A DNA stretch of 64,000 nucleotides, from assembly GCA_002269645.1 (NCBI GenBank), contig NIVC01001177.1, positions 62,001 through 126,000 on the forward strand, given 5' to 3'. This document shows, piece after piece, positions 9,701-59,822 of this stretch. The notes under the pieces are model-generated. The model was not told the origin of the DNA and ran no database searches. It saw only the letters and a program-made list of their open reading frames with translations. Position 1 is the stretch's first letter; every line of letters begins with the position of its first letter. The position numbers were made by a program, and so were the translations under genes. The DNA is from Macrostomum lignano. Taxonomy: Eukaryota.

Positions 9701-10159
9701 AGCTATAAGAAAGGCACAAAAGATTAACATTGGGTCTGCCTCCCTTCGAAAGCAATAAAAATTTTGTGCTTTAAAAATTAAAACTTTCTATCTCCGTAGT
9801 GTATTTTTCTGCGAAAAGTGGCCTTCAAAACTTTTCCCCCATACATTTTGTTTTGAATGTTGCGTCCTTCTACTTTGGTAGTCCTTAGGTCCGACCATTG
9901 CAGAAACTTTGTTTGGTTACCGCTCTCTGCCTCTGTGAGCAGGCAGCAACAGCAAAACAACGGGTTCGCGCTTGGCCTCGCCCGAGAGGACCCTGCAAGG
10001 TGAGCAGCAGGACGTCCTGCAGAGGCCGGGTGCAGCAGTCTTAGACTCAGACCACGTAGCCCGCCAGTTGAAACATTCTCTGCGCCCTCCTCTCCATGTG
10101 GAGCACCAGACTGTCGAGGTTGGTGAGCCGCTGGCATGGTTATGGCAAAGTAAACTGTT

Positions 10160-10330
10160 GGCACCCTGCCGCAGGCATGTAGCGCTGTGGCAATTCTGCT
10201 CATTCCTGAGCACACAACACGCACACAGGGTGTACAGTGGCACTGACTTTCTAATTTTCATGCATGCACACTCTGTGCCTTGCGGGTTTGGCCATCATGA
10301 TTGCAAATCGCATGACAACACCCCCGGGAA
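10160..10330 (-). mobile_element. SINE family 2 fragment (another fragment at ~10845-10915)
   Basis: Shares AAGGCACAG..TGCATGC..ATTAGAAAGTCAG..CTGTACACCCTGTGTG..GCTCAGG with 17880-17990, 20115-20260, 24497-24545 and 57905-58080. Confidence 0.65.
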
Positions 10331-10934
10331 TTTTCGTGTCCAAGCTCCAAATGAATCTGGCCGCGCACGAAAGCGAAACATCGCTCGTGGCGCGTTGAGC
10401 TGCTCTGCCCCCTGGCAAGCTGAGTAGGTCTGCCAACGACTCTGAGTAGTTGCTCCGTGGATTATGGATTATAAAGCGCCTTTTACTTCAGTACTCGTAT
10501 TTCTGAGCATATAGAGGACCAGCAGTTCGTGCGATATATTTACCAGACAAATCAGATAATGTTGATTTTGATTACAGAACCGGTGCTCCGATATCATTTC
10601 CTTTCTTGGCTATTTGCTTTTCTATGAGCATACTATGGATTTAACCGGCCCGATCGAGTAAACAGAAACTTTCTTTGCAGTTGTAGCGAATGTACTACGC
10701 AGTGTGCTGCATGGCTGGTTACACAACCCAGGTTCCTAATTTTCTCTAAGCCGTCCGCTAACGGGCTACGTGATCAGCCAGTGCTGACGGCAACTCTACC
10801 GACTCCGCTGACTCCTGACATACTGAACGCAGGCACTCGTACACATGCTCACACGGAGTGTACAGCAGCCCTAAATATCGTCATGCATGTGCGCAATTTC
10901 TGTCTTCGTGGTTTGCCCACGACCTCGACCCAGT

Positions 10935-11162
10935 CGGAACAATTTGTGTCCTTGAGAGCAAGACACTTAACTCTGCATTGCTTCAGTTCACCCAGCTGTA
11001 AAATGTGGTGTGTGTGGTGACCCCCCAGTCCGACTGAACAGCCGTACAGTCCAAGTGCAATAGCTGCGGCTGAGCTGTCGGTTGCACATCTGCCCATTAG
11101 TACAGGTGTAATCAATTATTATTATTGTTATTGTTATTATTATTATTATTATCATTATTATT
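10935..11162 (+). mobile_element. CORE-type (MIR-core-like) SINE with (ATT)n tail
   Basis: GTGTCCTTGAGAGCAAGACACTTAACTCTGCATTGCTTCAGTTCACCCAGCTGTAAAATG resembles the MIR CORE domain. (ATT)n tail at ~11117-11162. Confidence 0.75.
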
Positions 11163-11163
11163 A

Positions 11164-12241
11164 CGAGGGGTGTCCCAAAAATAGTGGGAAAAATTGATCC
11201 ACAGACTGAATGTGAAATCAGAATTTTATGTAACATGCATCACTGAACTCTCAAAAGAGCCAATCGAAGCACGATGAAAAAGTGTGGAATAATGACCGCA
11301 AAATTGTGGAATAATGACATCAGTGCCGGGCATAAGTGTATATACAATGGGCTAACTTGGCATGTAACTTCGTTAAATAATGACCAGAACACTCGCGCGA
11401 CAGAGACAATCGCGGAAATCGACGTGGTGTTCTCGTGGAAGACGATACTGTTGAGTTCGGCATTTTCTTTTTCCTCATTCTGTTGTTCAGTGTTTCGTCG
11501 AAAGAAGGTCAACGCCAGTTCGTGTACTCCCAGTGGAAATTGGGGAAGCGAATTAGCGAAATTGTTAGCCAGCTGAGTGAAATTCACGGAGTGAGCGCGA
11601 TCTCAAAGAGTGCTGTGTATCGCTGGCTTGAAGAGTTCAGTCAAGGACGAACAGACGTTGCTGACGACACAGCAAACCGTGGCCGTCCGGTTTCTCCTTC
11701 AACGAAGACACTGGAAATGTAACAGAAATGTGACAGAGATCATTCGGGAAAATCCCCGTGTGACTGCAAGAGAGTTGGGGGATCGACTGGGCAGACCAAA
11801 AACCTCAATTCATCAAATTTTTCCTCTGCTGAAGAAGCACCTGTGTGGGCGCATCTTTGACCACGGCGACAACTTGGAGGGAGAGAAGTCCGGCGAGTTC
11901 TGATGCACGAGATTCCGCGTCGAGCTTATGCAGATGCCATCAATGTACTCTTCACGCGATGGACCAAGTGCTGCAAGCTGAGGGGTGACTTCGTCAAAAA
12001 TTGTTCAATCGATGGCGATGCTGAGTAGCCGACCTTGCTGGGCTTGACTTGGTGTAACTCTGCTCCTTAACCCTTGTTCTACTTTTAGCCATATTTTTGA
12101 AGGAAATAACATTTTGTCAAAATTAAAAAAGCAATAAAACTGTAGAATAGTTATCAATTCAGTGACGCATGTTACACTAAATTCTGATTTCGCATTCAGT
12201 CTGTGGATCAATTTTTCCCACTATTTTTGGGACACCCCTCG
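11164..12241 (+). mobile_element. Internally deleted mariner (Tc1/mariner) element
   Basis: Long TIRs starting CGAGGGGTGTCCCAAAAATAGTGGG, TA duplications at 11162-63 and 12242-43. Encodes HTH motifs (SKSAVYRWLEEFSQG..RGRP; IRENPRVTARELGDRL) fused to the C-terminus (LKKHLCGRIF..RWTKCCKLRGDF). The DD34D core is absent. Confidence 0.93.
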
Positions 12242-13702
12242 TATGATTATTGAGCCAGTTCATTGATTCTATAACGTTGCGTGAAATCAGCGTCAGCGTC
12301 GAAATGAACTGTCTCATTGAACACTCTCAGTCGACACTCGCCTTGATAATTTGCCAGTTGTAGAGCGTCGAAAAGATCCATGTCGGCCAGTGCTTGGGAT
12401 GCTAAACTTTATCAGTAAACTCGAATATTTATCGATACTTATCCGACCACCCAGGATGGTATTGACGTGGCTTATCGAAGCAGCTACTCGCTGGAAAGCG
12501 TGGATAGCAGCTAAGAAATTCGCATTAAGTTTGAAATAGACTACTATAATTGATATAACAGTATCGCTTTTGACAGCCAAACTGAGAATCCTCCATACGC
12601 TTCCTGCGAAAAGCCTTGGCTCCGTCTTGCTTTAGTCTATGGGCCAAAGACTGCAAAAGCCAAGCAAAGTGATAAAAAGCAAAATTTATTCATTGGAAAC
12701 TTAGACTAAGGCCAGGGAGACCAGGGAGGGTGAGAAGCAAGCGGGCTGCGGCCAAAAACTATATGTATAGCGCCTTCTTGCCAATTGATGGGCGCCCCAA
12801 ACTGCAGCAACCGTGGTGCTGGCGCCCCTGGCGCTCATACGATGGCACCCCGAGGTGGCACTCTTTGTACTGGCCACATCAATGTTGCCCCCCCCCCAAA
12901 AAAAAAGATGCGCTCCTCTAAATAATGATACCTTCGGGATGGAGTCAAGATGAGCATCACGTAGGAGCTTCTCTAAAGGTTTTTCTAAAGCTCTAAAAAA
13001 TTCACGATGCAGTTGACGCGAACGTGGCAGATGAGTTTCAGTTGGCCCTTGTTTCTAACAAAAGGCCAGAATGACTGACAGACGTAAGTGCCTCTTCTGA
13101 AGTTTTGCATCAGACAGTATAATAATTTGTACGAATGCATGCATCCTTGACAGCTGAACAAGACTAGCAATCAACATCTCGTCAGGCCTAATTCTATCGT
13201 AAGTGAAGAAGTTAGAATTCTTTTTTCATTGAGAATGGCTCTCAAAACCCAGTCTGGATAAAAATTGCTCTGCCGTAGCAGCATAGGTAGAAATGTCTAG
13301 AAAACTTTTTGTACGAGGCAAGCGGTACTCGGAACGGAATTGAGCAAAAAAACAAGCCAACTTATCCCTTCTGAGCGTAAAACCGATGCAAACGCCATGC
13401 TTCATCAAGAACAAGCTCTTAAAATAATTTATTTTCCTGTATTACAGATCTTTAAGTGGCGTGTATGAGGGATACATATAAGCGTTAGAGATTAAACAGG
13501 GACGTATTACAACAGCTAGTAGCAGTGTAGCACAACAGTACAGTAGCTGGTGAATTACCGCATCGGAGCTGTTTTGTGATGATCGCCAGAAGCAAGTCAA
13601 TCGAAAGTCAACAACACACGTTTTACTTACTGTTAGAACTTACCTGAATAAGCTGGATGAACAATGAACTGCATGAGAGGCAATTAAAGGCGTGTTACTC
13701 AC

Positions 13703-16324: not shown

Positions 16325-16550
16325 ATTGTGTGCCCTTGAGCAAGACACTTAACTCTGCATTGCTTCAGTTCACCCAGCTGTAAAATGGGTGCCAGCATTA
16401 GCTGGGGTAATTGAGGGTGTGTGCAGGGCAACCCCTTTCCACAGTCCTTGGACTGAACAGCCGTACGCAGCCTTCGGATTCGCGGCGCAATAGCTGCGGC
16501 TGAGCTGTCGGTTGCACATCTGGCCCAATTAGGGCAGATTATTATCATTT
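16325..16550 (+). mobile_element. CORE-type SINE
   Basis: GTGTGCCCTTGAGCAAGACACTTAACTCTGCATTGCTTCAGTTCACCCAGCTGTAAAATGGG plus the body shared with 10935 and 6195; short ATT tail. Confidence 0.78.
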
Positions 16551-17144
16551 TTGAGCTTAAAACATCTAGCAGTTAAATTCAGACTCTAAATTCAGACCAG
16601 TAGACAAAAATGTTGTTTGTGACGCAGCTTAAACGGGTGATAAATTGAATTAGCATTTTTTGATGCGTATAGCCAACAAGTCAATACTGCAACTATCCTA
16701 ACTGTCAGACCATCATGTGTTGCTCCAACAGATGTCTTCACGAGCCAAGCACTGGGGGGGGGGGGCAGAAAGTGTAGTGTGTGACCAGACCAGGCCGCAA
16801 TCTTGGCAACCGTATAATTACATTCTCGCTGAACTTCGCCATTCTCTGCACTATCATGGAACGCCAATCCTATAAATTGATTTCGTCTGGTGGATTCTCG
16901 CAGCTCGATGCATTTAAGTAATAAAGATTCATTTTAATGTAACTACATGTAAGTATACGCCTACACTTTGTAGCGACAAAACACATCATTAGCATGTATG
17001 CATATGCATGTAGGGCCACTATACGCATACATACCGGTACATAGACTCCCGGGAGATCCCAGGGGATCCCAGGTATTCTTATCTAGCCTCTCAAGAACTC
17101 TATTCAAGGAGGGACGAAGGACAAAGGAATGATGTTCAAGGCAC

Positions 17145-17866
17145 AGGGAGGGACGCAAGAGAAACAGGGGACGCAAGAGAAACAGGGGAGGGACTGAGAG
17201 AAACAGGGGAGGGACTGAGAGAAACAGGGGAGGGACTGAGAGAAACAGGGGAGGGACTGAGAGAAACAGGGGAGGGACTGAGAGACACAGGAGAGGGACT
17301 GAGAGACACAGGGGAGGGACGTGAGACAACGGGAGGGACGTGAGAGACACAGGGGAGGGACGTGAGACAACGGGAGGGACGTGAGAGACACAGGGGAGGG
17401 ACGTGAGACAACGGGAGGGACGTGAGAGACACAGGGGAGGGAGTGAGACAACGGGAGGGACGTGAGAGACACAGGGGAGGGACGTGAGACAACGGGAGGG
17501 ACGTGAGAGACACAGGGGAGGGAGTGAGACAACGGGAGGGACGTGAGAGACACAGGGGAGGGACGTGAGACAACGGGAGGGACGGGAGAGACACAGGGAG
17601 GGACGTGAGACAACGGGAGGGACGTGAGAGACACAGGGGAGGGAGTGAGACAACGGGAGGGACGTGAGAGACACAGGGGAGGGACGTGAGACAACGGGAG
17701 GGACGTGAGACAACGGGAGGGACGTGAGAGACACAGGGGAGGGACGTGAGACAACGGGAGGGACGTGAGAGACACAGGGGAGGGAGTGAGACAACGGGAG
17801 GGACGTGAGAGACACAGGGGAGGGACGTGAGACAACGGGAGGGACGGGAGAGACACAGGGGAGGGA
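17145..17866. repeat. Compound minisatellite (21-bp units, then alternating 19/22-bp units) inside a SINE family 2 copy
   Basis: GAGAGACACAGGGGAGGGACGT / GAGACAACGGGAGGGACGT, flanked by AAGGCACAG on the left and TGTACATGCC..CTGTACACCCTGTGTG on the right. Confidence 0.95.
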
Positions 17867-18711
17867 AATGCCGGAAATGTACATGCCGGACGATTAGAAA
17901 GTCAGGACTGCTGTACACCCTGTGTGTGACCGTGTGCAAGAGACATGCCTACAGCATTAGGGCGTCTGCATGTGCTTAGGAGTCAGTGGCCGCTAAAGTG
18001 AAGAACTCAAACGAACGATACAATAACGCAATATTTAACTGAGTGTTAACCCAGCTCCAAGCAAAACTTGATCCGAGAGAAGCAGCACAGCGCAGATTTT
18101 GCGCTCCGATCCTGTTTTTATATTAATTCCAGAGTTCCTCTCGTTTGAGGCGGAGAGTGCCTTCACAACAGATGTTTTAAGTGGGGACGCAGCCCTTGTT
18201 CAAGTTCAGCCAAAAGCACCAAAATAGCTAGTTGCTGGGGAAGTCCGCTCTGCCCTCGCAGGGGTGGCGGAGTGGTGGATTTGACGCATTGGCTGAGTTA
18301 GACGGCTCTGGCTCTTAAGTCCCTTCTCCATCGGCGGAATGTTCGCCTGGTCGTCTCCGGGCGTACGAGACCAGACTATTCTATATATAGTCCGGTTTCC
18401 TGTAGCTCCGTACAAGTTGTCTCGATCCCAGACGGCTCAATCTCGTCCTGTCGCCAGGGACAGCGAGATCCTCTTCGGTCTCCATTGCTTGGTCCTTTTG
18501 TCGATTTTACTTTACATTACTTAGTTACAACAACAACAACAACAACAATACTACTACTACTAAGTACTAACGAGCTTTATTTAGCTGCATGCCACTGTGT
18601 TATGTTATATGAAAGTCCAAACCTCAAGATAGTAACAAGTTTCAACGCGTTCGACATGCCAAAAAATCAGCGCCAATGTTCATTTTTTCTTCAGTGATTC
18701 TGTGTGCTCAA

Positions 18712-19110: not shown

Positions 19111-19985
19111 TACTTTCATATAATATAACAAAGTTTCATGCAGGTAGATAAAGAAAGCCAAAATAAAGTTGTTTGCTGCCCATATGTGCAAAATTGTTGG
19201 GTAAAAATTACAAGTTCATATGTTTATCCAGTCAACAGTTATAACAACTATAAAACCGTACTTATTCAACTATGACAACGCAAATTGCACAAGGAGTAAA
19301 CTAGCTATGCTAATTGGTTAACAACAACAATTAAGGATTGTTGAATTTATATTGCTAAGAGAGGCCATGCGTTAGGGCCCAGATTAAAGGTAGAACAGCT
19401 GGTCGCAGATCTGCGGATTCGGCTCCTTCCCGAGGCTCTGACCAACCAGGTAAGCCAATCGGTGGGCGTACTGGCAAGGCGCTGGGACTCGAATAGTGCC
19501 AGGCCAATTAGCGTACAGGTGAGTCAGTTTGTAGGTAAAAACTTGAACCGAATCAGCGTTTAATCGGGTTTCGTTTTCGTCAATGATGACATTGTAGTGC
19601 GTTGGCGTGACAGTGCCCTGCGTGGCAAGTTTTTAAGACAGTTTACACAAACTTATTTTACAGAACTAACCTCAGCTAACTTTGCTTAACTAATAGCTAA
19701 TTTGATAATCAGAGACAAAATCGCACCTGTTGGGTGAACTGTGACACCAGATAGAAGTCATAATAACCCGGCATGGTTACTGTTGAGTCCACCACGGTAC
19801 CTGGCAGCGGGTTGCTCAATTCCCGATTTTGCTGCTGCTGCTGCTGTTGCAGGAAAAACCGCGCGCTGATTCGCTTCTTCACGATGATCACCTTCAGGCC
19901 GGGCGGCGGCCGTCTAGCGGCGCTGTACAGCTCGCGCAGAAATACCGACACCTGCGGTGGTGCGGGTGGGACAGGTGCTAAGACA

Positions 19986-20352
19986 TGTAGCCCAGTGGTC
20001 TAGCGAGACTCTGATGTGCCAGCGGTCCAGGCTCGATTCCAAGTGCAGTCACATTAATTTGGGGCTAATCTGGAATCTCGGCTTGGCTCTGCTCGTGCAA
20101 TTAACGCCCAGCTTGAGGGCCAACCCCCAAGACACAGTGAAGTGTACATGCCTAACGATAAATAAAGTTAGGGCCGCTGTACACTCCTGTGTGAGTGTGT
20201 GCCTGTGCGTATGACTGCGTACGTATCCGCGCGCTTGTGTGCCTGCTCAGGGGAGTCAGCGGAATGGGCAGTAATGCCTCTCGCCGGTTGTGTGACAATT
20301 TCGACTAAAGTGCGCCGGGGTGCACGCAGCCCCCCGTCTTTAATAAAAAAGA
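19986..20352 (+). mobile_element. Full-length tRNA-derived SINE (family 2) in PIWI intron 6
   Basis: A-box-like TAGCCCAGTGG, B-box-like GGCTCGATTCC, A-rich tail TAATAAAAAA. Flanked by GACAGGTGCT(A/G)AGACA at 19970-19985 and 20353-20368, a probable TSD. Confidence 0.75.
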
Positions 20353-20724
20353 GACAGGTGCTGAGACAGGTGCTGCAACACGTGCTGAGACAGACACTAT
20401 TAGACATGGCACGAATCGCACCTGAGCAAACTCGATATCCTTGACCTGCTCCAGCATGGAGTCGCTGACACCGTCTCTGTAGATGACAATGGAGGCGGGT
20501 AGGCTGCCGCCATTGCTTAGCCTGTACCTCTCCAGTGCAGCACTGAAGCCCTGTACCAGACGCTGGTGCAGCTCGGCTCTGCCACACTGGTGCAACTCGG
20601 CTCTGCCATGCTGCATCATTGCTGCGTAGGAGTAGTACTGCGTCATCAGGGCTGGAGTTGTTGATGGGGCGTCAGAGGTTGAAGTCACTGATCGTTAGCC
20701 TACGCTCGTATCTTTGCTAAAGAT

Positions 20725-21615
20725 CTACCTATCTTGCAACATCCGCAATTTTCAATTATCCTTAATCTCCCATCCTCACAACATTCCAACATCCTTAATC
20801 TTCCAACATCCTCGATCTTCAAACATCCATTATCCTCAATCCCCAACATCCCCAATCTTCAAACATCCATTATCCTCAATCCCCAACATCCTCAATCTTT
20901 AACATCCTCAATCTTCAAACATCCTCAATCTTCAAACATCCATTATCCTCAATCCCCAACATCCTCAATCTTTAACATCCTCAATCTTCAAACATCCATT
21001 ATCCTCAATCCCCAACATCCTCAATCTTTAACATCCTCAATCTTTAACATCCTCAATCTTCCAATTTCCTCAATCTTCCAATTTCCTCAATCTTCCAACA
21101 TCCCTAATATTCCAACATACATTATCCTCAATCTTCCAATGTCACAAATCTTCCAACATCCTCATTCTTCCAACATCCTTCATCTTCAAACATCCTCATT
21201 CTTCTAACATTCTCCATCTTCAAACATCCTCAATCTTCCAACATCCTCATTCTTCAAACATCCTCAATCTTTCAACATCCTCATTCTTCCAACATCCTCA
21301 ATCTTCCAACATCCTCATTCTTCCAACATCCTTCATCTTCAAACATCCTCATTCTTCTAACATCCTCATTCTTCCAACATCCTCAATCTTCCAACATCCT
21401 CAATCTTTCAACATCCTCATTCTTCCAACATCCTCAATCTTCCAACATCCTCATTCTTCCAACATCCTTCATCTTCAAACATCCTCATTCTTCTAACATC
21501 CTCATTCTTCCAACATCCTCAATCTTCCAACATCCTCAATCTTCCAACATCCTCAATCTTCCAATTTCCTCAATCTTCCAACATCCCTAATCTTCCAATA
21601 TTCCCAATCTTCCCA
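20725..21615. repeat. 17-bp minisatellite (AACATCCTCAATCTTCC) in PIWI intron 5
   Basis: Direct reading, about 50 degenerate units. Confidence 0.96.
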
Positions 21616-22621
21616 ACGCATCAACCATTGAAACCAAAGTCGCTCACGATTCAGAGAGAAGACAATGCCCAGAACCGACTGGTTATGCCGTCTGTCATGA
21701 TAGGAGTCCATGCCGACCACCATGCAACCCTCGTACGGCATGCTCAGGCCCCAGGGTATGCCGCCCAGCTTGCAGCTCATCTGCAGGGCCACCCTGCTGG
21801 CCACCGTAGTCGATCTTTCGTCTGAGCTGCTCACGTTTCTGAGTGGCGAGTGACGGATTGTTGATTGTTGACGGAATGGAAGGTGTGACTTGCTTGTTTC
21901 GAGTCGATTTGAATATTGCAGAATGTGCATGAATTCGCAGAATCGATCCAACTAGTAATTTAATCGCTGAGTTGCTACTGAGCTGCAGTTTTCTGCCCTA
22001 GGACCAGTGAAAATGAGGATCTGATCCCACTGCACTCACCGACAATCGGTCCACCCTCGGAGAGGACATTAAAACCTGCTCAGGAGGCAGCCGCCTGCCG
22101 TTGACGTGCACCAACTCCGGTCGAATCTCCACACCGTATCGGGCCGAGCGCTGCTGCGAGGCTTGATTGCCAGCCATGTCATTCGCGAACTGCATCAGCC
22201 GATGTACCGAGCCCTCGGCCTCTGCCTGACGATGCTGTTTTTGTCCGTAATCAACTGGCGGTCCCCGAGCATCTCGACGGTCAATCCGGTCATGATGCAC
22301 AATTCCGGCGGTATCAGACTTCTTGGGGCCTGTTGAAATAAAACTGTTAATATAAATAAATATTCACAATACGGTGACATGTCCCACAACCGGGGTCCAC
22401 GAGAATTAACCCGCAGACGAATTGCCCATCCGAGGTTTGACCGCAATGCTTAGTACGTCTTAATACAGAGACTTACCCGATCAAACCGTTTCGATGGAAA
22501 CTGTATACTAAATGCTGATTTTCTTGTAGGTTTCCATTTCTATGCGCATAATAAAGGGGTACGTATCAGATACACCAGTGGGCTATTAATTCATGCGTAT
22601 GCCATGTCGCTTTGTCCCATA

Positions 22622-22790
22622 CAGGGGCGTCGCCATGGATTTTATGGTGGGGGGACAAAGCCAAGAGTTCAACATGTACTAAATTTGTACTACATGACTA
22701 AATTTTGGCACTTATTTTGGCACCGCAGGCACTCCTTTTAGCGCCGCAGGCACTCATTTTGGCGCCGAAGGCGCTATATTTTGCCGCCTT
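22622..22790 (+). mobile_element. 5' part of a CAGGGGCGTCGCC-headed non-autonomous element (family also at 48470)
   Basis: CAGGGGCGTCGCCATGGATTTATGGTGGGGGGAC followed by ~3 copies of the 21-bp GGCGCCGCAGGCACTCATTTT unit. Same head and unit at 48470-48720. Confidence 0.65.
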
Positions 22791-23534
22791 AAAGAAAAAT
22801 TATTGATTACCACAACGCTAAATGCGCCAAAAGCGCCAATACCGTACGCGGGCCCGCACTCGTACACCCGCTCACACAAACAAATATAGCGCATGACAAA
22901 AAACAAGCGTGCAGTGGTTGTACCTGGCCGCGACCTTCCTGACCCCGACGACGCGGAACTGACACGAGCATCGGCTGGCTAGCATCCTGGATCTGATATC
23001 CGTACCTTGTTCTATAGTACTCGCCAATAGTGATGCTGTGTAGTTCATTCGTAGCCGGATCTCTGTATTCAAATTCGGTGAAGACATTTGCCTCCCAATC
23101 AATATCGTTGATGCGGAATTTACGGTTATTGTTCAAGCGCATCATGACGCTTTGGCCAAATAATGCGTCATTGAAGTATTGGATCAAATGGTCTTTGTTC
23201 ACCTGCGCCTGCTCGTACATATAATCCAGAACAGTGTATTGGTGAACCACTTCGAACAGCAAGTCAACATGCAGCAGAGGGAATTCGGGCTCCTCGGAGG
23301 GCACCACGGCGGCATAGAAACCGGGCCACATCTGCAATGGTAAAATGATTGCAGCTTCCTACAGTTCAAATTGAAATATTCAGTTAGGAAGCCAGATAAA
23401 AGTGAAGTAACGTAGTCTGCAATAGATACAATATTTTAGCACTTGATTAGCAAATAGCTATCAACGCCCACCCCCCGTTGTGGTGGCAACAAAGAAAGGA
23501 ATACAAATTTTTGAATAAACTACATTGTTTGTTA

Positions 23535-24292: not shown

Positions 24293-24974
24293 TATTTGTG
24301 ACGATTGTTTGTTATCTTAAAGAAAATGATGTTTAAAGCAAAAAAATTATCCTTTTAAGCCATGACTTGACCCTAACTCTACCCTTTGATTCTTGGCCTA
24401 CCAAAAACGCTCCCAATTGACCATTGGTATCTCAGAAACTCGTCCGCAATGAGTCTTAACAACTCAGCAATCCTCTGCTCTCAATGTACACTTTGTGCCT
24501 TGGGGGTTGGCCCTCATGAGTTGTAAATCACACAACAACACCGAGTCCATAAACATGAGAATGCTCACCGCCAGGCGAAAATTAGCGAGTGTAATCTCTC
24601 TGTCCGGATAAAAATAGTTTCGCTGCACCTGCTGCATGCCGAGATCCGGCTGCGCACTAGCAATGAGCACATTCAGCAGGTGCAAATACTCCGGGCTGTT
24701 GTGCAGCACCGGGCCAATCTGTACGATAGTCACTTCGCCGTGCCATCGACCAGCTGTAGCTTCGAAATGCACGCCCTCCGGTGGCGCCTCCAGCGGCTGA
24801 GGCGTGTACAGGATGCCACCGTCATAGATAAATGCGTCTGGCAGGCGGCCGGAATCTTGGAGGACCTGCAACGATTAAAACAAAATAATGGAATAATATT
24901 AATTTCCTTAGATTTCTTTTGTTAAAGTTCAATTAAAAGAGTGACTCAAAGAGCCACCTCTTACATATGATGCC

Positions 24975-25430
24975 ATTGATATAGGGCGCCCACCAAGGAG
25001 ATCTAGGGTGCCCACCAAGGAGATCTAGGGCGCCCACCAAGGAGATCTAGGGCGCCCACCAAGGAGATATAGGGTGCCCACCAAGGAGATCTAGGGTGCC
25101 CACCAAGGAGATCTAGGGTGCCCACAAAGGAGATATAAGGCGCCCACCAAAGAGATATAGGGCGCCCGCCCACCAAAGAGATATAGGGCGCCCGCCCACC
25201 AAAGAGATATAGGGCGCCCGCCCACCAAAGAGATATAGGGCGCCCACCCACCAAAGAGATATAGGGCGCCCGCCCACCAAAGAGATATAAGGCGCCCGCC
25301 CACCAAGGAGATATAAGGCGCCCACCAAAGAGATATAGGGCGCCCGCCCACCAAGGAGATAAAGGGCGCCCGCCCACCAAAGAGATATAGGGCGCCCGCC
25401 CACCAAGGAGATAAAGGGCGCCCACCAAGA
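24975..25430. repeat. 22/26-bp minisatellite (TAGGGCGCCC(GCCC)ACCAA(G/A)GAGATM) in PIWI intron 1
   Basis: Direct reading. Confidence 0.96.
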
Positions 25431-26664
25431 GACAGAAAATTAATTTGAAAGACTGAGCCAGCCTAAGACTAAACATCCAAATTCGCTATGTAGATTTTTA
25501 ACGAGTGAATTAACATTAGTGCTACAAGTCTGATAAGTGACGACTGAAAAGTCGTTTTCTTGAGTAATGCTCTGTTCCAATGGCCAAATATTGTAAGTTA
25601 AACAGCCAAGGCTTACTTGTTTAACGAATGATTTAAACTGCCAACACTCACCTGCAGCCGAAGCTGCTTGGACTCGAGCCCCGGTCTGAATAACACCTTA
25701 TTTTGCATTGCCTGGAAATTTTTAGATACTCTCAGGCGAATGTTGTTGCTAATCAGAGCGACCGGTTCACCGCTGACTCCGCGAGTCAGCTCCACGCCCG
25801 GCGGTCGGACGTCGGCGATGCGATAGCGAAGCAGCTTCCTGGACAGGCCGCCGCGCTCGTTGTCGTGGCCACCGAGACAGGCGAGCTCCATTCCTTGGGC
25901 CAGGCGATCAACTTCTTAACTGCCACCTTCGGTGCCTTGAACGGCTGGAGCTGCGGCGGCGGCTGCTGCTCCTGGCTGAGCCTCATCTGCCGGAGGCTGA
26001 AGCTGCATAGGCGGTTGCGGCTGCGGCTGTTCGTCTTGCCGAGACACAGGTGGCGCTTGTGTGGGCGGCGCCGCCCTGCCTCGAGCCCGGCCACGACCGC
26101 AAGTGGCTACTGCTGGCTGCTGCTGCTGCTGTTGTTGTTGTTGTTGTTGTTGTTGTTCTTCTTCTTCTTCTTCGTGTTTCATGCTGGAGGTGTTTTTGCT
26201 GAAATTTGCATAGAGACAACTTCAATGACTTGAATTAAGATTTTTTGGGCAAATGTTTACTCTGACTTCTATTGATTCTAGTGACTACTGGCCTACCCCT
26301 GAGATGAACTGTACAAAGCAAAGGTTTGTAACAGACTTGACCACTTTTATTTTGTTCCTTCTTGAATGAAATATATTTGATAAATAATCTAATCTAAATA
26401 AATAATAATTAAAAAAAAAATGATAAATATCAAAAATAATATGAAATATGATAATATTGGATATTCTACCTTGCGCCCTTAACTGTTTATAATGTACATC
26501 AAACTAATGTACATACAAAATACTCAAGGGCACGTTGTTCTCTAAGCGAACCCTCAGACTTCCAATATATAAATCGCATTCAATGCCCAAGTGGGGGCAA
26601 ACTTCTTTTCAGCAAATTCTACTGGCCTCGCGTCAATTAATACATTGGCGTGGCAAGCAAAGCA

Positions 26665-27167
26665 ATGGCTGTCCAACTGTAACTGCCCTCACCTGAGCCA
26701 TTTGATGTCAGCTGTGAACCTCACACTCTCGCTTTGCGCAGGGAAGACTGGTCATCGCAATTCTTGTGCTTCATTCAGGCCACAGGAGTCAAGGACCCCG
26801 CGCAACAGAGGCAAGTTCTGCTCTACACTGGCGGCAAAGAGCTGGCCAAACTATACAAACAGCTGAGCAACACCAAAGACACCATTGAGTCACTCCACAA
26901 GTCATTCAAGGACCACTTCACTAATTGCAACAGTATTGTATTCTCTAGGCATGAATTCCAAAACTGCAAGCAGCAGCCCGACCAGAGCATTGACAAGTGG
27001 GTCAGCCGACTGTACAGGACAGCAGAGAGCTGCGACTTCAAGGATCTGCAGGATTCCCTCATTTGCAATCAGATCGTCGCCGGGTGCAACTCAGAACAAC
27101 TTACAGATAACGGCTGCTCCAGACTGCCAACATCGGCCTTCAGGAGGCACTGCAACTGTGCCAGGTG
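26665..27167 (+). mobile_element. Ty3/Gypsy gag, 5' part (pseudogene)
   Basis: ATG 26665: MAVQL*LPSPEPFDV..EDWSSQFLCFIQATG..FQNCKQQPDQSIDKWVSRL..CDFKDLQDSLICNQIVAG, the retrotransposon gag pattern. PBS-like TTGGCG at 26645. Confidence 0.8.
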
Positions 27168-27179
27168 ACCAGAACAGTC

Positions 27180-30100
27180 CAGTGGTGTTAGCCTGGCGCG
27201 AATTTTGTGCTCAATGGCACGAATGCGCGATTTTCGAGGTATGGCGCGAATTTCGTTTAAGCCCATAGAGCGAAAAATTAGACGTTGATTCTGCTCTTAC
27301 TAAAGCTTATCTATGTATTATTTTATGAATTTAGTTCATGCCATTTTGTTTTTGGATTGATGTCATCATATCTTGCCTTGTGTTTCGTGTTCTTTTTGCT
27401 ACAGTTATTAGTTAAGCCACTTTTAAAGTTCTGCGTTGATTGAAATTTAGTCGACTTACGTGTAGGCATTTTTCAATGTAAAGTACATGTAAAGCAGCAC
27501 GATAAATTGTGTTTGGGGTATGATATGGTATCAGGCTATAGTTAAATTATATTAACTAGGGTTAGCTATTTTCAGGATAAGTTTGTCTTATTAAACAGTA
27601 AATTAGTCATCAAAACTTTCTTAATTAACAATCAATTAAACAATGCAAATTATTAATTTCAGCCTGATTGCCTGAAGTAAATGGCTAAAAAACGCACTGG
27701 AATGACGATTGGTTAAAGCAAACTAACAAGAATGGCGATAGCATTGGCCTGTGGGCTCGAAAGGCCAAGGACGGTGATTCCACTTCCAGCTATGAAGCAT
27801 ACTGCACCTGGTGCAATCAACCATTTTCATTCCGGAGTGGTCTAACTAATTTTAAGAGCCACTTGCGCTGCCAAGCACCAAACAGTATCGAGAGCGCTAA
27901 AGAGCAGCAGTTCGCTGAAGCTGCTTATGAATCCCACTAGCAGTGCTAGCACTGGACCAGGATCAGGCAACAGCAAGGAAAATGCTCATGAGCACGAATC
28001 TGCTACTGCGATTGCAAGAGTCAGCGAAATTCGATGCTGTGCAAGAATTGTTCTTAAGAATCGAAGCTTCGAGTCCGAAGATGATCTGGTTGACGATCTT
28101 CACGCCATCTGCCCCGATTCGAAAATTCCACCGGCAATAAATCTTCACCGAACTAAGATCACCTATTTGGTGACCCATGGGTTGTTCCCTTACCTCAAGG
28201 AGGTTGTTCTAAAAGATTTCAAGGCATCGGAATATTTTTCAATGCAGATTGATGAAGCAAATAAGAAGCGCAAGTATATTGGCATCGTACTACGCTACCT
28301 GAAAAAGTACAAGCAGCAACTGAAAGTGGAAGTAGTGTGCATCGATTTACCGTTGCTAGACTCGACAAACGCAGAAGGCATCGCTTCTGCTTTGATGGCC
28401 ACACTTTCGGAATGTGACCTTGTAGCCTCCAACTGCGTTGGTGTAATGACGGATAACTGCAATGTTATGCGTGGTGCCAAAAGCGGTGTGGTTGTGCGTC
28501 TGCAGAAAAACTGGATGTTGGAGGATGCAGTCTGCACCATGTGCATAATGCCACTAAGTACGCCTGTGATGCGTCTGACTTAAGTGTTTGCATCGAAACT
28601 CTCGTCCGGAACATCTACTCTCACTTCAAATTCGCACTGTCTGAACGTGACAGCTTCGACGCCATTGCTAATGAGCTTGAAGAAGTCAAGAACTTAGCTT
28701 TTCTCCAGCCAGTTGAAACCCGCTGGCTGCAGCTTCTTCCGGTCGTTGAACGTATTCTGCAGCTTCTTCAGCCACTGATGAAGTATTTCTCGGAGACGAC
28801 AGACACCGGTGCAAAGTTTGCCATCATGAAAACAAATGTATTAGACGCGAAGGTGCACTTTTTCCTGAATTTTCATTCAGAAGTTCTGAAGCCGTTGCAG
28901 AAATTTGAGTTGCTATTTCAGCAGAGTGGGTGCCAGATCCTCCAACTGCATGATCAACTGACGGATCTCATGCGCCTCTGGCTGCTGCGATTCGCGAAGC
29001 CTGACAAAGTCGCAGAAAAATTGTAGAAATTCGACGTCAAATATGAATCTATCTGGCTTTCTCCATTCTGAATCGCAATAGGCGAGCCAGCTAGACAACT
29101 CTTTGTCGAAATGTCAGCTGCGGACCAGCAAGAATGCCTTTTTTCAATGAAGGCATTTTTTAAGAAAGGAACAGAAAAACTAATAGAGTACCTACCACTC
29201 GAAAGCTCAATTCTCAGGGCGTGTAAGCTTCTGGACCCCAAAAATCAGAGCAACGATCGCTTTGTTCACTGGGTCATCACTTTAGCAAAGCATCTTCCAG
29301 CAATTGTGTCCGAGACTGAGCTAGACAGTCTCCGAGTCGAGGCTCGTCTACACCAGCACGATCTGCGAGATGTCAATGTCGAGAACATTGGATTGCTTGA
29401 ATTCTGGAGCAAAGTCTCTGAAGCAGACAACCGACCTCTGCTGCTGCGCATTGTGCAAGTGTTGTTAGTCCTTCCACATGGCAACACAGAGGTTGAGCGC
29501 GTATTCAGCAATGTCAGCGATGTCGTCACAAAGAAACGCTCGAGCCTGGCACCACTGACGGTGAAAGCGTTAGTAGTCTCCCGATCCTGTCTCCAGACAA
29601 AGTGCTGGTCAGCAGCTACACTTCCTGTCTCTCTGAGGCTAAAGAACATGTGTGCCAGCGTTTACGCTGCCTTCCGACAGCACCTGCAGCAGGAGAAGGC
29701 GGAAGAGGAGCAGAAGAAGCAGAAGGAGTTGGAGAAGCAGATTATTGCGGAAGTTCAAATGGAGAAGAAGGCGAGCAAGCCCTACACCAGCCTAGAGAAG
29801 TCGATGACGACCACCAAGGAGCTAATCAGGCAGAAGCAGACGGAGAAGGAAAATGCTGTAACGACTTCTGCTGGAAATGACTAGGTCAAAAGAAGACAGA
29901 GACACAGAGTTGGCGAAATTGCAGCAGCAGCAGCAGCCGAAGCTTCACGAAAAGAAGATGAAGGAAGCCGAGAAGATTGCCGAGAACGTTCTAAAGCAAA
30001 AGGCTATTAAAAAGGGGGCTTTTGAAACCTCTGCTAAAAACTGTCACCGACAAAAGGTTCCGTCGAAATTGACCACTTAAAAGCTTCCTAGCTCATGCTT

Positions 30101-30755
30101 AGTGTTTCCTAGCTCGCTCCTGTTGAATTGTGCCAGTTTCTCATACATTTTTCTTCTAAGTTAGTGTCTTCAAGCTCTTAAATTACGTTGCTTGCTGCTA
30201 GAACTTTTATTTATTTTTTTAGCTACTTCTCACAACTCATGTGCCAGTTAGACTATCAATGTAGTTTATACGCTCCTATGCAGTTCAATTGTCAAAATCA
30301 AACATATTTTTACTATTGCCATTAACATTGCTATACATTTTCGAATTCGCTCAATTGAAAATCTCTAGAAAATGTTTTTAAGAACTCGTTTTGCCTTACA
30401 TTATTTTTAATGCTAAATGTGCTTGCTGTGTTTTCAAGCTCGTAAATAATGTAAATCACAGCATTATTTGCTACTGGAATTTTCATTTATTTTTCAAGTG
30501 ACTTCTTACAAACTCAAGTGCCAGTTAGACTGTTAATGTAGTTTATTTTAATATGCAGTTCAAGTTCAAAATCAAATATATGTTTACTATTATGTTTACA
30601 TTGCTATACATTTTCAAATTTGGTCAATTATTGAACATTTCTGGAAAATATTTTTAAGAACTTGTATTGCCTAATGATATTTTTATGCTATACTAACTGC
30701 AAGTGCAAAAAAGTATGCAGGTGCAAAAAAATGGGCACCCCCACTAACACCACTG
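27180..30755 (+). mobile_element. hAT DNA transposon (3.6 kb) with frameshifted transposase (~27683-30080)
   Basis: 12-bp TIRs CAGTGGTGTTAG/CTAACACCACTG. BED finger YCTWC..FKSHL, FSMQIDE, MTDNCNVMRG, CSLHHVH, ETRWL, dimerisation domain LPHGNTEVERVFS. Subterminal GGCGCGAATTT repeats at the left end and a ~280-bp direct repeat at 30150-30700. Confidence 0.93.
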
Positions 30756-31500
30756 GCTAGGTCCGTAAAGCTGAAAAATACCAATCAGCCACTATGGAAT
30801 TGCACCGCAAAGAGGCTGTCAATCTTGTGGGGCGCTCAAGAGGTGAGCAAATTGACAGGCCAGCCTTCAAGTCCAACAATCGGCAAACGTGCTAACAATT
30901 TGGCAAATTTGGGCACCATTGCGAAGTTGCGATGCGGACATATGAAAACCTATAGCATCTGTGACAAACTGGGACACCTTGCCAAGGCCTGCATGTTGAA
31001 GCGAACTCAAGAGACTGCATGCACATCCTCGATGATCAAAGGTGGCAGGACCCAGAGAGCTTTCAGCAGTCAACTGAGCAATGTTGAGGTGTTCTGTCTG
31101 GCTATAGACAAACTGCCGCTACTAACAATCTCAATCAATGGCAAGCAACTGGAAGCCCTTGTTGACAGTGGCGCCAGTTGCAATGTGATTGACAACCTTT
31201 CAGGAGATCAAGACTGCTAAAACGCCACTTTGGCTGTCAACAAGGCGGCTTTATCCTTTCAGCTCTCGGTTGTCCCTGGAAACTGTTGGCCAGGCTAAGC
31301 TCATGGTCAGCGTCTGCAGTTCAAAGAACATGGTTGACTTCACAGTGGTGCGCAACCCAAGGTGTCACCATTGTGGGAAGGGCCATGAGTGAGAAATTTG
31401 GGGTACTGCGAGTTAGGCAGAAAAGAAAGATACGTACAAATCAACAGAATTGGCAGCACCAACAAAATGGAAGCAGCTGAACTTGAGTGTCCAGAGAGCT
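30756..31500 (+). mobile_element. Ty3/Gypsy gag 3' part, zinc knuckles and aspartic protease (truncated; no RT/RH/IN)
   Basis: ARSV..AEKYQSATME resumes gag; CDKLGHLAKAC knuckle; protease INGKQLEALVDSGASCNVID..GRAMSEKFGVLR. Confidence 0.85.
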
Positions 31501-41732: not shown

Positions 41733-44700
41733 GCCAGTTCAACCAGATCCCGCCGATCCAATGTCTTTGCATCGTTATATCGCCGACACTCTGGAAGATA
41801 GCGAAGATGAAGATAGACAGCTTCAGAAGCAGCAGCAGCAGCAGCAGCATAATGCTGATGAGCCTGGAGTTGCTAATAACGACTATCCATACTACCAAGT
41901 AAGTTTAGCATCGGTTTTGCTGCTCCAGTGATCTACTGTAAGGTTTATGTCTACTGCAGTGGCACTGTGTGAGTCACTGAAGGTACTGGATATCAATGAT
42001 TTCATTCAATACCTTTCACAGGATCGTTACAACCAGCAGCAGCAACAGTATCCAGACGACCAGCAGCAGTACCCAGGAAATTATCAGCAGTACCCAGATG
42101 AGAATCAGCAGTACCCGGAGCATCAACAATACCCAGACGACCAGCAGCAATACCCAGCCGATCCGGAGCAGCGCTTCTCTGAATTAGTGGAAGCCGAAGC
42201 CGAACAGCCGCCAATTCCGGAGGGTCGCAAAGGCGGCGGCGGCCTACTTGGTCGCCTATTCTCGTCGTTTCGCAATTCAAAGCGTAAGACTTCGCAGAGG
42301 CAGCAACAGCGGCCGCAACAGCAACAGCCGCAGGGAGTTCCTAGCGACTCCGCTGAGCAACAGCCGGGCCTAGCTGAGCAGGGCAAGTGGCGCTCAAATC
42401 CGAGCATGTTCAATGCTAACGAGAATGCCACGCCTGGTAATACGCTGGATCCTAGATTGCCGCCAGGATCTATGCAACAGCAGCAGCAGCTTCAGCCGCC
42501 GCAACCGCAACAGCAGCGTCTGATGCAGGCTGGTGTTAGAACAGTGCCGGACACTGAGGTTCGCGTCATTCTACTGGATGGTGAAGAGATTGGCGTACCG
42601 CTGCCTAGAAAAGCCACGGGAGCGGAGCTAATGGCGCGAGTTTGCGAACACATCGACGTTCAAGAGACTGATTATTTTGGTTTGACTTATGTTGACGCCA
42701 AGGAACGCATGTGGTTTTGGTTGGATAACGAGAAGAAAGTTCTTAAACAGCTTAAACATTGCGATAACAGGCTGTTGAATTTCCAGGTTTGTGTTGAATT
42801 TCCTGCATGAAAAAAGTGAAAATATTCTTGACTGGCCTACTTATTGCAGTAGTCTAGTATGCGCGTATGCATCCATTTCTTCGAAACTCCAACTCCTCTT
42901 GAGGTTCTCTACGTTCGGCAAACGTTGTAAACAACGATTTAAAATCGTGCTTTTGTCGACTGTTGAGGCTCTCGAGGAGTTTTGTTCTTAGTTTCACACA
43001 TGATAAACCATGAATCGTCTTCTTTACGTATGACCCACTATTATAGAGTTTTATCTTTATAATTTAAGGCTTCAGATCGCAATTAAGTTTCTTCTAACGT
43101 TGAGACTATCCGCATTCGACCTCTAAATCACCGAGATGCACGATAAAAACACTCCTGGCAGGCGTAGATGGATTCTATTTGGGAGCAGAAATCTTGAAAA
43201 ATACATGCTGGTGTACATTTAAGGATTAGGGTATATTTTTGTTATTATTAGTGCTATTGGACTATGAAATTTATCATAATTTTTTCACCATTATTAGTAA
43301 TAAAATTACACTACTAATCACAGAGTTAAATATTTTACTGTATTATAATAGAATGTTAGTTGAGACATTTTCTTGCTGACTTGGACTTTGATTCAGGTCG
43401 AGAGCCCCAAAGGGGCTTGCTTATCCAGTTTGGATTTTTTGCTCTAAGCTGACGTATTCGCTTGCATTGTCCGACTGCTCCCTGGGCTGCCCTTCGCTTA
43501 CTAAACTTGTTTTCAAATATGGATTAATATGCTGATGTTTATCATAAATAATCAAAATCTATGTCAAAACAATTCATTCCTTTGACAGGTGAAGTTCTAT
43601 CCGCCTGAGCCGAACATGCTATTCGCTGATGTGACTCGCTACCAGCTGTGCCTGCAGGTTAGGCAGGACATTTACACCGGCAAGCTGCCTTGCACCTGGG
43701 TTACCCAAGCTCTGTTAGGCTCATTTCAAGTACAGTCTGAACTAGGCGACTACGATCTAGCTGAACACGGCGAACTTGACAATATCGATTATTTGCAAAA
43801 TTTCGAATTCGTGCACAATCAAACGCCCGAGTTGGTTCGCAAGATAGCGGAGCTGCACCGCGGTCACAAGGGCGTCACGCCTGAGGTTGCCGACCTGCGC
43901 TATTTGGAAACTGCTCGCCGATTAGAATTCTACGGCGTTGACTTGCATCCGGCTCGCGATCTGGATGACGTTGACATTACTATTGGCGTCTGCTTTGGCG
44001 GCGTCCTGGTGTACAAAGATCGCATGAGAATATCCCGATTCGCTTGGCCGAAAATATTGCGCATCTCCTATAGGAAGAATCTGTTCTATTTGAAGATTCG
44101 CTCCGATCTGTACGACAACGTTGAAGCTGTGGTCGGATTCAAGATGATGAATCACAAGTGAGACTGGTCAATAATTGTGTCATAAATTATTAGTTATAAG
44201 AATTCAGAATCCCAAGAGCTGTTTGGTATCCCAAGAACTGAGAATTCCTTTAGTTGACTCATTGTTGCTTCTAGTCTAGACCATGGCGTCCCGCAGAGCC
44301 TCTCTATCCGGCCCTCGGGTCTTTTGGAACTTCAAAATAGCAATCTGGCCCGCTCAATGTTTATATCTCTTCTCAGCCCTCTTCTCTCTAATCTCCTCTC
44401 TACTCTCTTCCTATCTCCTCTTCTCTCCTCTCCTCTCTTCCCTTCTTTCCTCTCTTCGCTTCTCTATCATCTCTCTCCTCTCTTCTCTTCTCTCTTCTCT
44501 TCTCTCTTATCTTCTCTCTTCTCTTCTCTCTTCTCTTCTCTCTTATCTTCTCTCTTCTCTTCTCTCTTCTCTTCTCTCTTCTCTTCTCTCCTCTCTTCTC
44601 TTCTCTCCTCTCTTCTCTCCTCTCTTCTCTCCTCTCTTCTCTTCTCTCCTCTCTTCTCTCCTCTCTTCTCTTCTCTCCTCTCTTCTCTCCTCTCTTCTCT

Positions 44701-50409: not shown

Positions 50410-59822
<9,413 letters not shown>

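Follow-up and report, generated by a model that had tools for sequence, protein, structure and literature searches.

A MID-less PIWI gene of the flatworm Macrostomum lignano is very probably a pseudogene of an old paralogue

In the flatworm Macrostomum lignano, does a gene with all four catalytic motifs of a PIWI slicer but eroded guide-binding domains still encode a PIWI protein of a non-canonical kind, or is it a paralogue in decay? The question is raised by a locus on the minus strand of a stretch of 64,000 nucleotides (contig NIVC01001177.1, positions 62,001 to 126,000, assembly GCA_002269645.1), which we call the window and to whose positions all coordinates refer unless another sequence is named. 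We find that the locus is very probably an unprocessed (duplicated and intron-containing) pseudogene of an old PIWI paralogue which is related to, but distinct from, Macpiwi1 and Macpiwi2 of the same species. Family homology and the retained introns (eight exons, GT-AG introns) agree with this assignment, and in comparison with the M. lignano database protein A0A1I8GTA4 and with Macpiwi2 the gene carries a nonsense codon, a frameshift, a deletion of a whole domain and an internal duplication. The original prediction had left the choice between a decaying paralogue and a functional non-canonical PIWI (a decoy, scaffold or atypical nuclease). The four disabling changes bear out the former, as does the presence of the frameshift in a sister copy too; the latter is unsupported for this locus and keeps a low probability for A0A1I8GTA4 only.

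Two lesions leave the gene without an uninterrupted open reading frame (ORF). The first is a premature TAA at 25918-25916, codon 31 from the annotated ATG, where A0A1I8GTA4 has Glu. The second is a 1-nt deletion in exon 4 between 22203 and 22202 (CGG TAC A-T CGG CTG ATG), in a segment that A0A1I8GTA4 reads as RARYNRLMQ. A TGA follows three codons later at 22197-22195, where the conserved frame of the L2 linker (APRSLIPPELCIMTGLT...) ends, the remainder of exon 4 being in another frame; two frames of this exon give matches to the PIWI profile, nodes 371-407 in one and nodes 398-459 in the other. No canonical product would extend as far as the PIWI domain. Farther downstream, exon 6 contains a 24-nt tandem duplication (Tandem Repeats Finder, 20563-20608, period 24, 1.9 copies, 95% match) by which the segment of the catalytic Glu, GRAELHQ(C/R), has been doubled. 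The slicer tetrad, previously described as intact, can indeed be located in full in the conceptual translation (DEDH, in the motifs GMDSYHD, GRAELHQ, YRDGV and QYAH), but it lies downstream of the frameshift and its intactness is nominal only, given the doubled Glu segment. We infer that no functional PIWI protein is made by the locus.

It could be argued that both lesions, or the missing domain, are errors of assembly or consensus and that the gene is in reality intact, since long-read assemblies of M. lignano are prone to single-base indels and the missing base belongs to a 2-nt run of A. We consider this highly unlikely. The nonsense codon arose by a substitution (GAA to TAA), a change atypical for long-read error, and the same frameshift is implied in the clearly different M. 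lignano protein model A0A1I8JI51. This model shows about 15 in-frame differences from the window gene and therefore represents a distinct copy; it has the same out-of-frame L2 string, besides an N-terminus in a shifted frame, so the frameshift was inherited and is unlikely to be a sequencing error. In addition, an identical gap at the position of the MID domain is found in all three database models of the gene as well as in the window, and there is no MID-like sequence anywhere in the 64 kb.

The deletion itself has removed about 120-126 residues, comprising the end of L2, its ADW motif included, and the whole MID, corresponding to residues ~502-622 of Macpiwi2. In the alignment with Macpiwi2, ...SSPRVDR joins directly to SDERSTTVASRVALQMSCKLGG; the alignment with sequences of the PDB leaps from PIWIL1 residue 472 to 606 (~134 residues unmatched), and the Pfam Piwi model is matched at positions 42-300 only. 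No Pfam match to ArgoMid was obtained in the translation of the gene. Profiles of the MID region and of the full-length protein (852 nodes) were built from 103 full-length PIWIs. With the full-length profile no match to nodes 460-585 was obtained in any of the six frames of the window, and neither hidden Markov model, in six-frame searches of 19-27 kb and of the whole window, detected a displaced or degenerate MID exon. Similarity to the MID-region profile begins only at ERSTTVASRV, the start of exon 5. The near-invariant columns Y (column 889), K (column 893), P-S-Q (columns 904-906) and T (column 913) all fall inside the gap, and by established knowledge of Argonaute structure their Y, K and Q are those of the pocket that holds the 5'-phosphate of the guide. 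The gene thus has neither the full N-L1-PAZ-L2-MID-PIWI architecture nor the 5'-phosphate pocket (Y, K, Q, K).

That residues of MID are missing had already been noted in the original prediction, as had the failure to see the pocket residues, which is explained by the position of the pocket columns within the alignment gap; the size of the loss, given there as 70-90 aa, was too small and did not include the end of L2. The same prediction had given SNRLETSKSHLPFRQQ in this place. This string, translated from the 217-nt interval between exons 4 and 5, does not resemble the MID profile and is therefore intron sequence, not a remnant of the pocket. Nor was any similarity to MID seen in the 38 codons that are open ahead of exon 5. 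It should also be noted that the in-frame junction of exons 4 and 5 requires the weak donor TT/GTCGGT (a slash marks the splice junction here and below), whereas the stronger donor G/GTGAGT, 4 nt downstream, would shift the PIWI exons out of frame; judged by splice strength, the downstream donor may be the preferred one at the end of exon 4.

The PAZ domain is altered as well, and here the claim that its usual aromatic residues are missing was upheld by a comparison of conserved columns among the 103 PIWIs. Where these have LTRYNNKTY, the motif of the 3'-end pocket, the window gene reads MMRLNNNRKF and so has lost the motif, the substituted columns being 99-100% conserved: T to M (100% T), Y to N (100% Y, H in Macpiwi2), T to K (99%) and Y to F (99%). 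The PAZ fold is still recognised, the Pfam PAZ model scoring 72.9 bits against 111 for Macpiwi2.

The gene model on which these statements rest has eight exons and seven introns and extends from 26182 to 19384 (Table 1). Exon limits were taken from tblastn matches of the database models A0A1I8GTA4 and A0A1I8J3X4 together with inspection of splice sites. That the gene is a homologue of the PIWI clade is clear from sequence searches against solved structures, in which the best match was PIWIL1 (phmmer E=3.5e-93), followed by Ephydatia Piwi, Siwi and MILI. Three M. lignano entries named "Piwi domain-containing protein", A0A1I8GTA4, A0A1I8J3X4 and A0A1I8JI51, are 85-100% identical to the conceptual translation. 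There is no second PIWI-like sequence in the window by tblastn and by PIWI profile in six frames. The coordinates first proposed for the feature, 19384-23331, were right at the 3' end, where the stop codon lies, but not in the limit of the gene, which reaches 26008 or 26182 depending on the start codon. The in-frame ATG at 26182 would add 58 codons (26182-26009) before the annotated start, and this extension, missed by the database models of the MID-less family, encodes polyglutamate and polyglutamine as well as an arginine-glycine (RG) motif, GRGRARGR (26098-26075), of the type associated with arginine methylation and Tudor docking. At the other end exon 8, with the catalytic His and the conserved C-terminus, is intact to its stop and can be spliced in frame (CAG/GTGCGA ... 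CGCAG/GGC). Its translation is 60-70% identical to PIWIs from other phyla, in accordance with the earlier view of a well-conserved C-terminus, and it was left out of all three database models, which end at ...VSQFTQ(Q). For exon 5 there is an alternative acceptor at 21838.

Table 1. Positions of the exons, and of the interval between exons 4 and 5, of the PIWI gene in the window
Feature	Positions	Strand	Content
Exon 1	25652-26182	-	N-terminus; annotated ATG 26008; donor CAG/GTGAGT
Exon 2	24569-24865	-	N/L1 region; AG/GT boundaries
Exon 3	22924-23331	-	PAZ domain; MMRLNNNRKF at 23145-23116
Exon 4	22044-22329	-	L2 linker; LIPPELC at 22317-22297
Exon 4-5 interval	21827-22043	-	217 nt at the expected place of MID; intron in database models
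Exon 5	21648-21826	-	Start of PIWI domain; CKLGG 21774-21760; GMDSYHD 21714-21694
Exon 6	20422-20651	-	PIWI domain; GRAELHQ 20607-20587 and 20583-20563; YRDGV 20481-20467
Exon 7	19727-19951	-	PIWI domain; CAG-repeat polyglutamine insertion 19849-19829
Exon 8	19384-19617	-	C-terminus; QYAHRLA 19473-19453; stop TAA 19386-19384

The closest full-length relatives, of the same species and of the PIWI clade, are Macpiwi2 (ALD16251.1 / KR132203) and Macpiwi1. In the protein searches a cluster with ALD16251.1, that is Macpiwi2, was the next-best match after the three M. lignano models, and its identity to the window gene is ~50% overall and 59% in the PIWI domain. The two genes have in common the N-terminal RG motif (KGRGRSRGRAG in Macpiwi2), the DEDH residues and the C-terminus. 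They differ in that Macpiwi2 is a protein of 900 aa with a complete L2-MID-PIWI region and an uninterrupted ORF, whereas the window gene lacks MID and has the duplicated Glu segment, the polyglutamine tract, the nonsense codon and the frameshift. Their exon structures are also very different: the coding sequence of Macpiwi2 consists of three exons and two introns, with PAZ, L2, MID and the first part of PIWI in a single exon, as against seven introns in the window gene, of which only one (before the WPGF motif) is at an identical position. Intron gain or loss between these paralogues of one species must therefore have been large. A loss of MID from the window gene as whole exons was considered; in Macpiwi2 MID lies within one large exon, and the structures are too far apart for a choice.

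At only ~50% identity the window gene can be identified with neither Macpiwi1 nor Macpiwi2, and Macpiwi3 was rejected as well, since the PIWI domain printed for it in Supplementary Fig. 1 of PMC4604429 has a different sequence. Macpiwi3 is described as ~30% identical to Macpiwi1, and no small RNAs were recovered in its immunoprecipitation (PMC4604429). The same study reported full-length transcripts for Macpiwi1-3 only and otherwise mentions "PIWI-like gene fragments" (Zhou et al., 2015, RNA 21:1885). These are genomic loci without a full-length transcript, a description which the window locus fits; as the paper gives neither sequences nor coordinates for them, the window locus is only a candidate for one of these.

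The history of the lineage was addressed by a codon comparison with Macpiwi2, for which the locus extracted from NIVC01001103.1 (positions 10001-13472 of the extract) was used. The proportion of synonymous differences (pS) was 0.63-0.83 and thus saturated, the nonsynonymous divergence (dN) was 0.36-0.65, and the ratio dN/dS was at most ~0.26, a value limited by the saturation of synonymous sites. Saturation indicates a paralogue of old date, as opposed to a recent copy of Macpiwi2, and the low ratio indicates purifying selection over most of the existence of the lineage. There was one stop in the 738 codons compared, which agrees with a recent inactivation; recent decay would also be the reason why the DEDH motifs and the C-terminus are so well kept. 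The lineage is a fourth and old PIWI lineage of M. lignano, beside Macpiwi1/2 and Macpiwi3, and is now represented by MID-less copies only.

Of these copies there are at least three in M. lignano, two with the frameshift and one, A0A1I8GTA4, open. A0A1I8J3X4 is the model of the window locus itself and is identical to it except around both lesions. It leaves out "GGS*", and by the use of a donor 20 nt inside exon 3 it places the first 43 codons of exon 4 out of frame, so that the LIPPELC...TGLT segment is replaced by the out-of-frame PKKSDTAGIVHHDRIDRRD...; this structure looks like that of a gene predictor stepping around the lesions. The three models share the MID gap, the RAELHQCG duplication, the polyglutamine tract of exon 7 and the altered PAZ motif. 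The need for the weak donor at the in-frame junction of exons 4 and 5 is likewise common to all copies. Private amino-acid changes number seven in the window copy, eight in A0A1I8JI51 and five in A0A1I8GTA4, and those of the last include the radical R108I, G110V and VS341-342MP. The open copy therefore does not look better protected than the broken ones.

Several observations weigh against a dead family, and they have to be set beside the evidence given so far. All splice sites of the gene are GT-AG. In A0A1I8GTA4 the frame is open from exon 1 to exon 7, with neither frameshift nor stop, and the AlphaFold2 model of this protein is confident (predicted local distance difference test, pLDDT, 80; predicted template modelling score, pTM, 0.78), with low-confidence segments at the N-terminal tail, the MID junction (444-456) and the duplicated Glu segment (528-533; pLDDT <50). 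The best structural matches of this model are Siwi, MILI, HILI, MIWI and EfPiwi, with template modelling (TM) scores of 0.6-0.75. Erosion has also been uneven among the domains. Taking as conserved the columns conserved in at least 85% of the 103 PIWIs, the window gene keeps 99 of 128 in PIWI, against 101 in Macpiwi2, but 25 of 46 in PAZ (Macpiwi2, 32) and 13 of 24 in L2 (Macpiwi2, 17). Columns kept by Macpiwi2 have been lost here in 16 of 49 cases in PAZ and L2 together and in 9 of 101 in PIWI (Fisher p=0.0007). Among the three copies, moreover, only one of 212 residues is variable in exons 5-7, compared with ~20 of ~400 in the upstream exons 1-4 (p=0.002). Such domain-skewed erosion and the invariance of the PIWI exons could mean that selection on the PIWI domain has continued.

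These same features, together with the RG motif kept in frame upstream of the annotated start, would be expected if an open copy of the A0A1I8GTA4 type were a working MID-less PIWI (a scaffold, a decoy, or a nuclease that is guide-independent or unusually loaded) and the window gene its recently inactivated duplicate. We regard this as improbable. The skewed patterns are explained equally well by a PAZ domain that had diverged before the deletion, or by gene conversion among the copies, and selection at the protein level cannot reach PIWI exons that lie downstream of a shared frameshift. The confident fold, from the structure prediction against Siwi and MIWI that had been proposed as a check and was run on the sister A0A1I8GTA4, indicates that the remaining domains are still predicted to be PIWI-like and is no demonstration of function. 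The pocket of MID is required for stable guide loading in Argonautes in general. A working open copy would further depend on the weak GTCGGT donor, with the out-of-frame GTGAGT only 4 nt away, and would have to tolerate the 8-residue duplication on its catalytic Glu segment; its radical substitutions have accumulated at a rate like that of the dead copies, and two of the three known copies are broken. Among 1.84 billion cluster representatives there was no relative with the MID-less architecture, orthologous or otherwise, besides the family's own representative, and all 149 other best matches were split at query residues ~440-456, where they carry MID. In a collection of 5.8 billion clusters the family consists of ab initio models only, with no transcript-based protein, in contrast to Macpiwi2 with its three transcript-based NCBI entries, and no full-length transcript has been reported for it (PMC4604429). 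That the family as a whole is alive, its open member with the RG N-terminus and the last exon added being a natural eukaryotic N-PAZ-PIWI protein with DEDH and a role independent of guide anchoring, is on present sequences distinctly doubtful.

Siwi (5GUH), MILI, HILI, MIWI and EfPiwi, which give the best matches for the N-L1-PAZ-L2 and PIWI parts, all have the MID that holds the guide 5'-phosphate, unlike the window gene. MID-less proteins of the Argonaute family are known only as a few prokaryotic Argonautes and as an allele of C. elegans, none of them a natural eukaryotic N-PAZ-PIWI protein and none of demonstrated function. The prokaryotic ones are a handful of truncated proteins thought to be incapable of guide binding (Ryazansky et al., 2018, PMC6299218); apart from being short or truncated, they have no PAZ either, in which they differ from the N-PAZ-PIWI layout of the window gene. 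The allele wago-4(tm1019) is an in-frame deletion of MID made in the laboratory (bioRxiv 10.1101/235713).

The course of events in an unprocessed pseudogene of this kind may be reconstructed as follows. An old PIWI paralogue was under constraint for most of its history, and an internal deletion took the end of L2 and the whole of MID, including the 5'-phosphate pocket; this deletion was probably the inactivating event for the entire family. Insertions of the slippage type, namely the 24-nt duplication and the CAG expansions, were acquired, the MID-less gene was copied, and the window copy gained the nonsense codon of exon 1 and the 1-nt deletion of exon 4.

Two introns of the gene are filled with large minisatellites. 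The one in intron 5 has a 17-nt unit present ~51 times (20731-21613), and that in intron 1 a 26-nt unit present ~19 times (24978-25429). In intron 6 a dispersed repeat of ~85 nt (~20117-20202) recurs at 58006-58088 and 10842-10918 with 72-77% identity, and a separate stretch of the same intron (~20279-20346) matches, at 81%, positions 16343-16411 of the extract from NIVC01001103.1, near the Macpiwi2 locus. These repeats may belong to a small element resembling a miniature inverted-repeat transposable element or a short interspersed nuclear element. Comparison of the introns among themselves and with the remainder of the window revealed no common inserted element, only short dispersed repeats, and a tRNA scan of the region found nothing in the tRNA-like stretch of intron 6. 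Directly upstream of the gene, 26734-31220 is occupied by transposon debris: a gag-like ORF (26734-27168) and an ORF with zinc-knuckle and aspartic-protease motifs (30825-31220), both retroelement-like, enclose hAT-transposase-like ORFs (27927-29884; Pfam Dimer_Tnp_hAT E=7.9e-10). Downstream, on the minus strand, 16961-17939 is a low-complexity repeat rich in Pro, Ser, Leu and Val which is open in all three minus-strand frames (ORFs of 250-307 aa) and falls together with a strong skew of both GC and AT in the bin of 16-18 kb; its ORF at 16961-17884 had no Pfam match. Elsewhere in the window there are an ORF with a FERM N-terminal domain (41947-42810; E=1.1e-16) and an ORF with MTA_R1 and a GATA zinc finger (58489-59499).

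Since the gene adjoins debris with gag, protease and hAT ORFs (26.7-31.2 kb), it might be asked whether it is a transcribed pseudogene with a role at the level of RNA, for example by supplying small RNAs or antisense transcripts that act on Macpiwi1 or Macpiwi2, or by belonging to a transposon-rich region that produces PIWI-interacting RNAs. Small RNAs derived from pseudogenes are known in other animals. The sequence offers no direct evidence for such a role, and the saturated nucleotide divergence from Macpiwi2 makes cross-regulation based on sequence implausible, so that we hold it to be very unlikely; a pseudogene in the plain sense remains the reading we prefer.

For work on flatworm small RNAs the practical meaning is that A0A1I8GTA4, A0A1I8J3X4 and A0A1I8JI51, as found in UniProt and WormBase-ParaSite, appear to be prediction constructs which bypass the stop and the frameshift, and they should not be tallied as functional PIWIs in surveys that report an "amplification" of PIWI in M. 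lignano. If, against expectation, the family were alive, the candidate roles would be those of a Tudor-binding scaffold, a decoy or a non-canonically loaded nuclease, and selection would have left its footprint in PAZ and L2 eroding faster than PIWI and in PIWI exons that hardly vary among the copies; an open sister copy that was expressed and selected would be a natural experiment on a PIWI without 5' anchoring of its guide. As it stands, the apparent decay of a fourth lineage would be a small data point on the turnover of PIWI genes after genome duplication.

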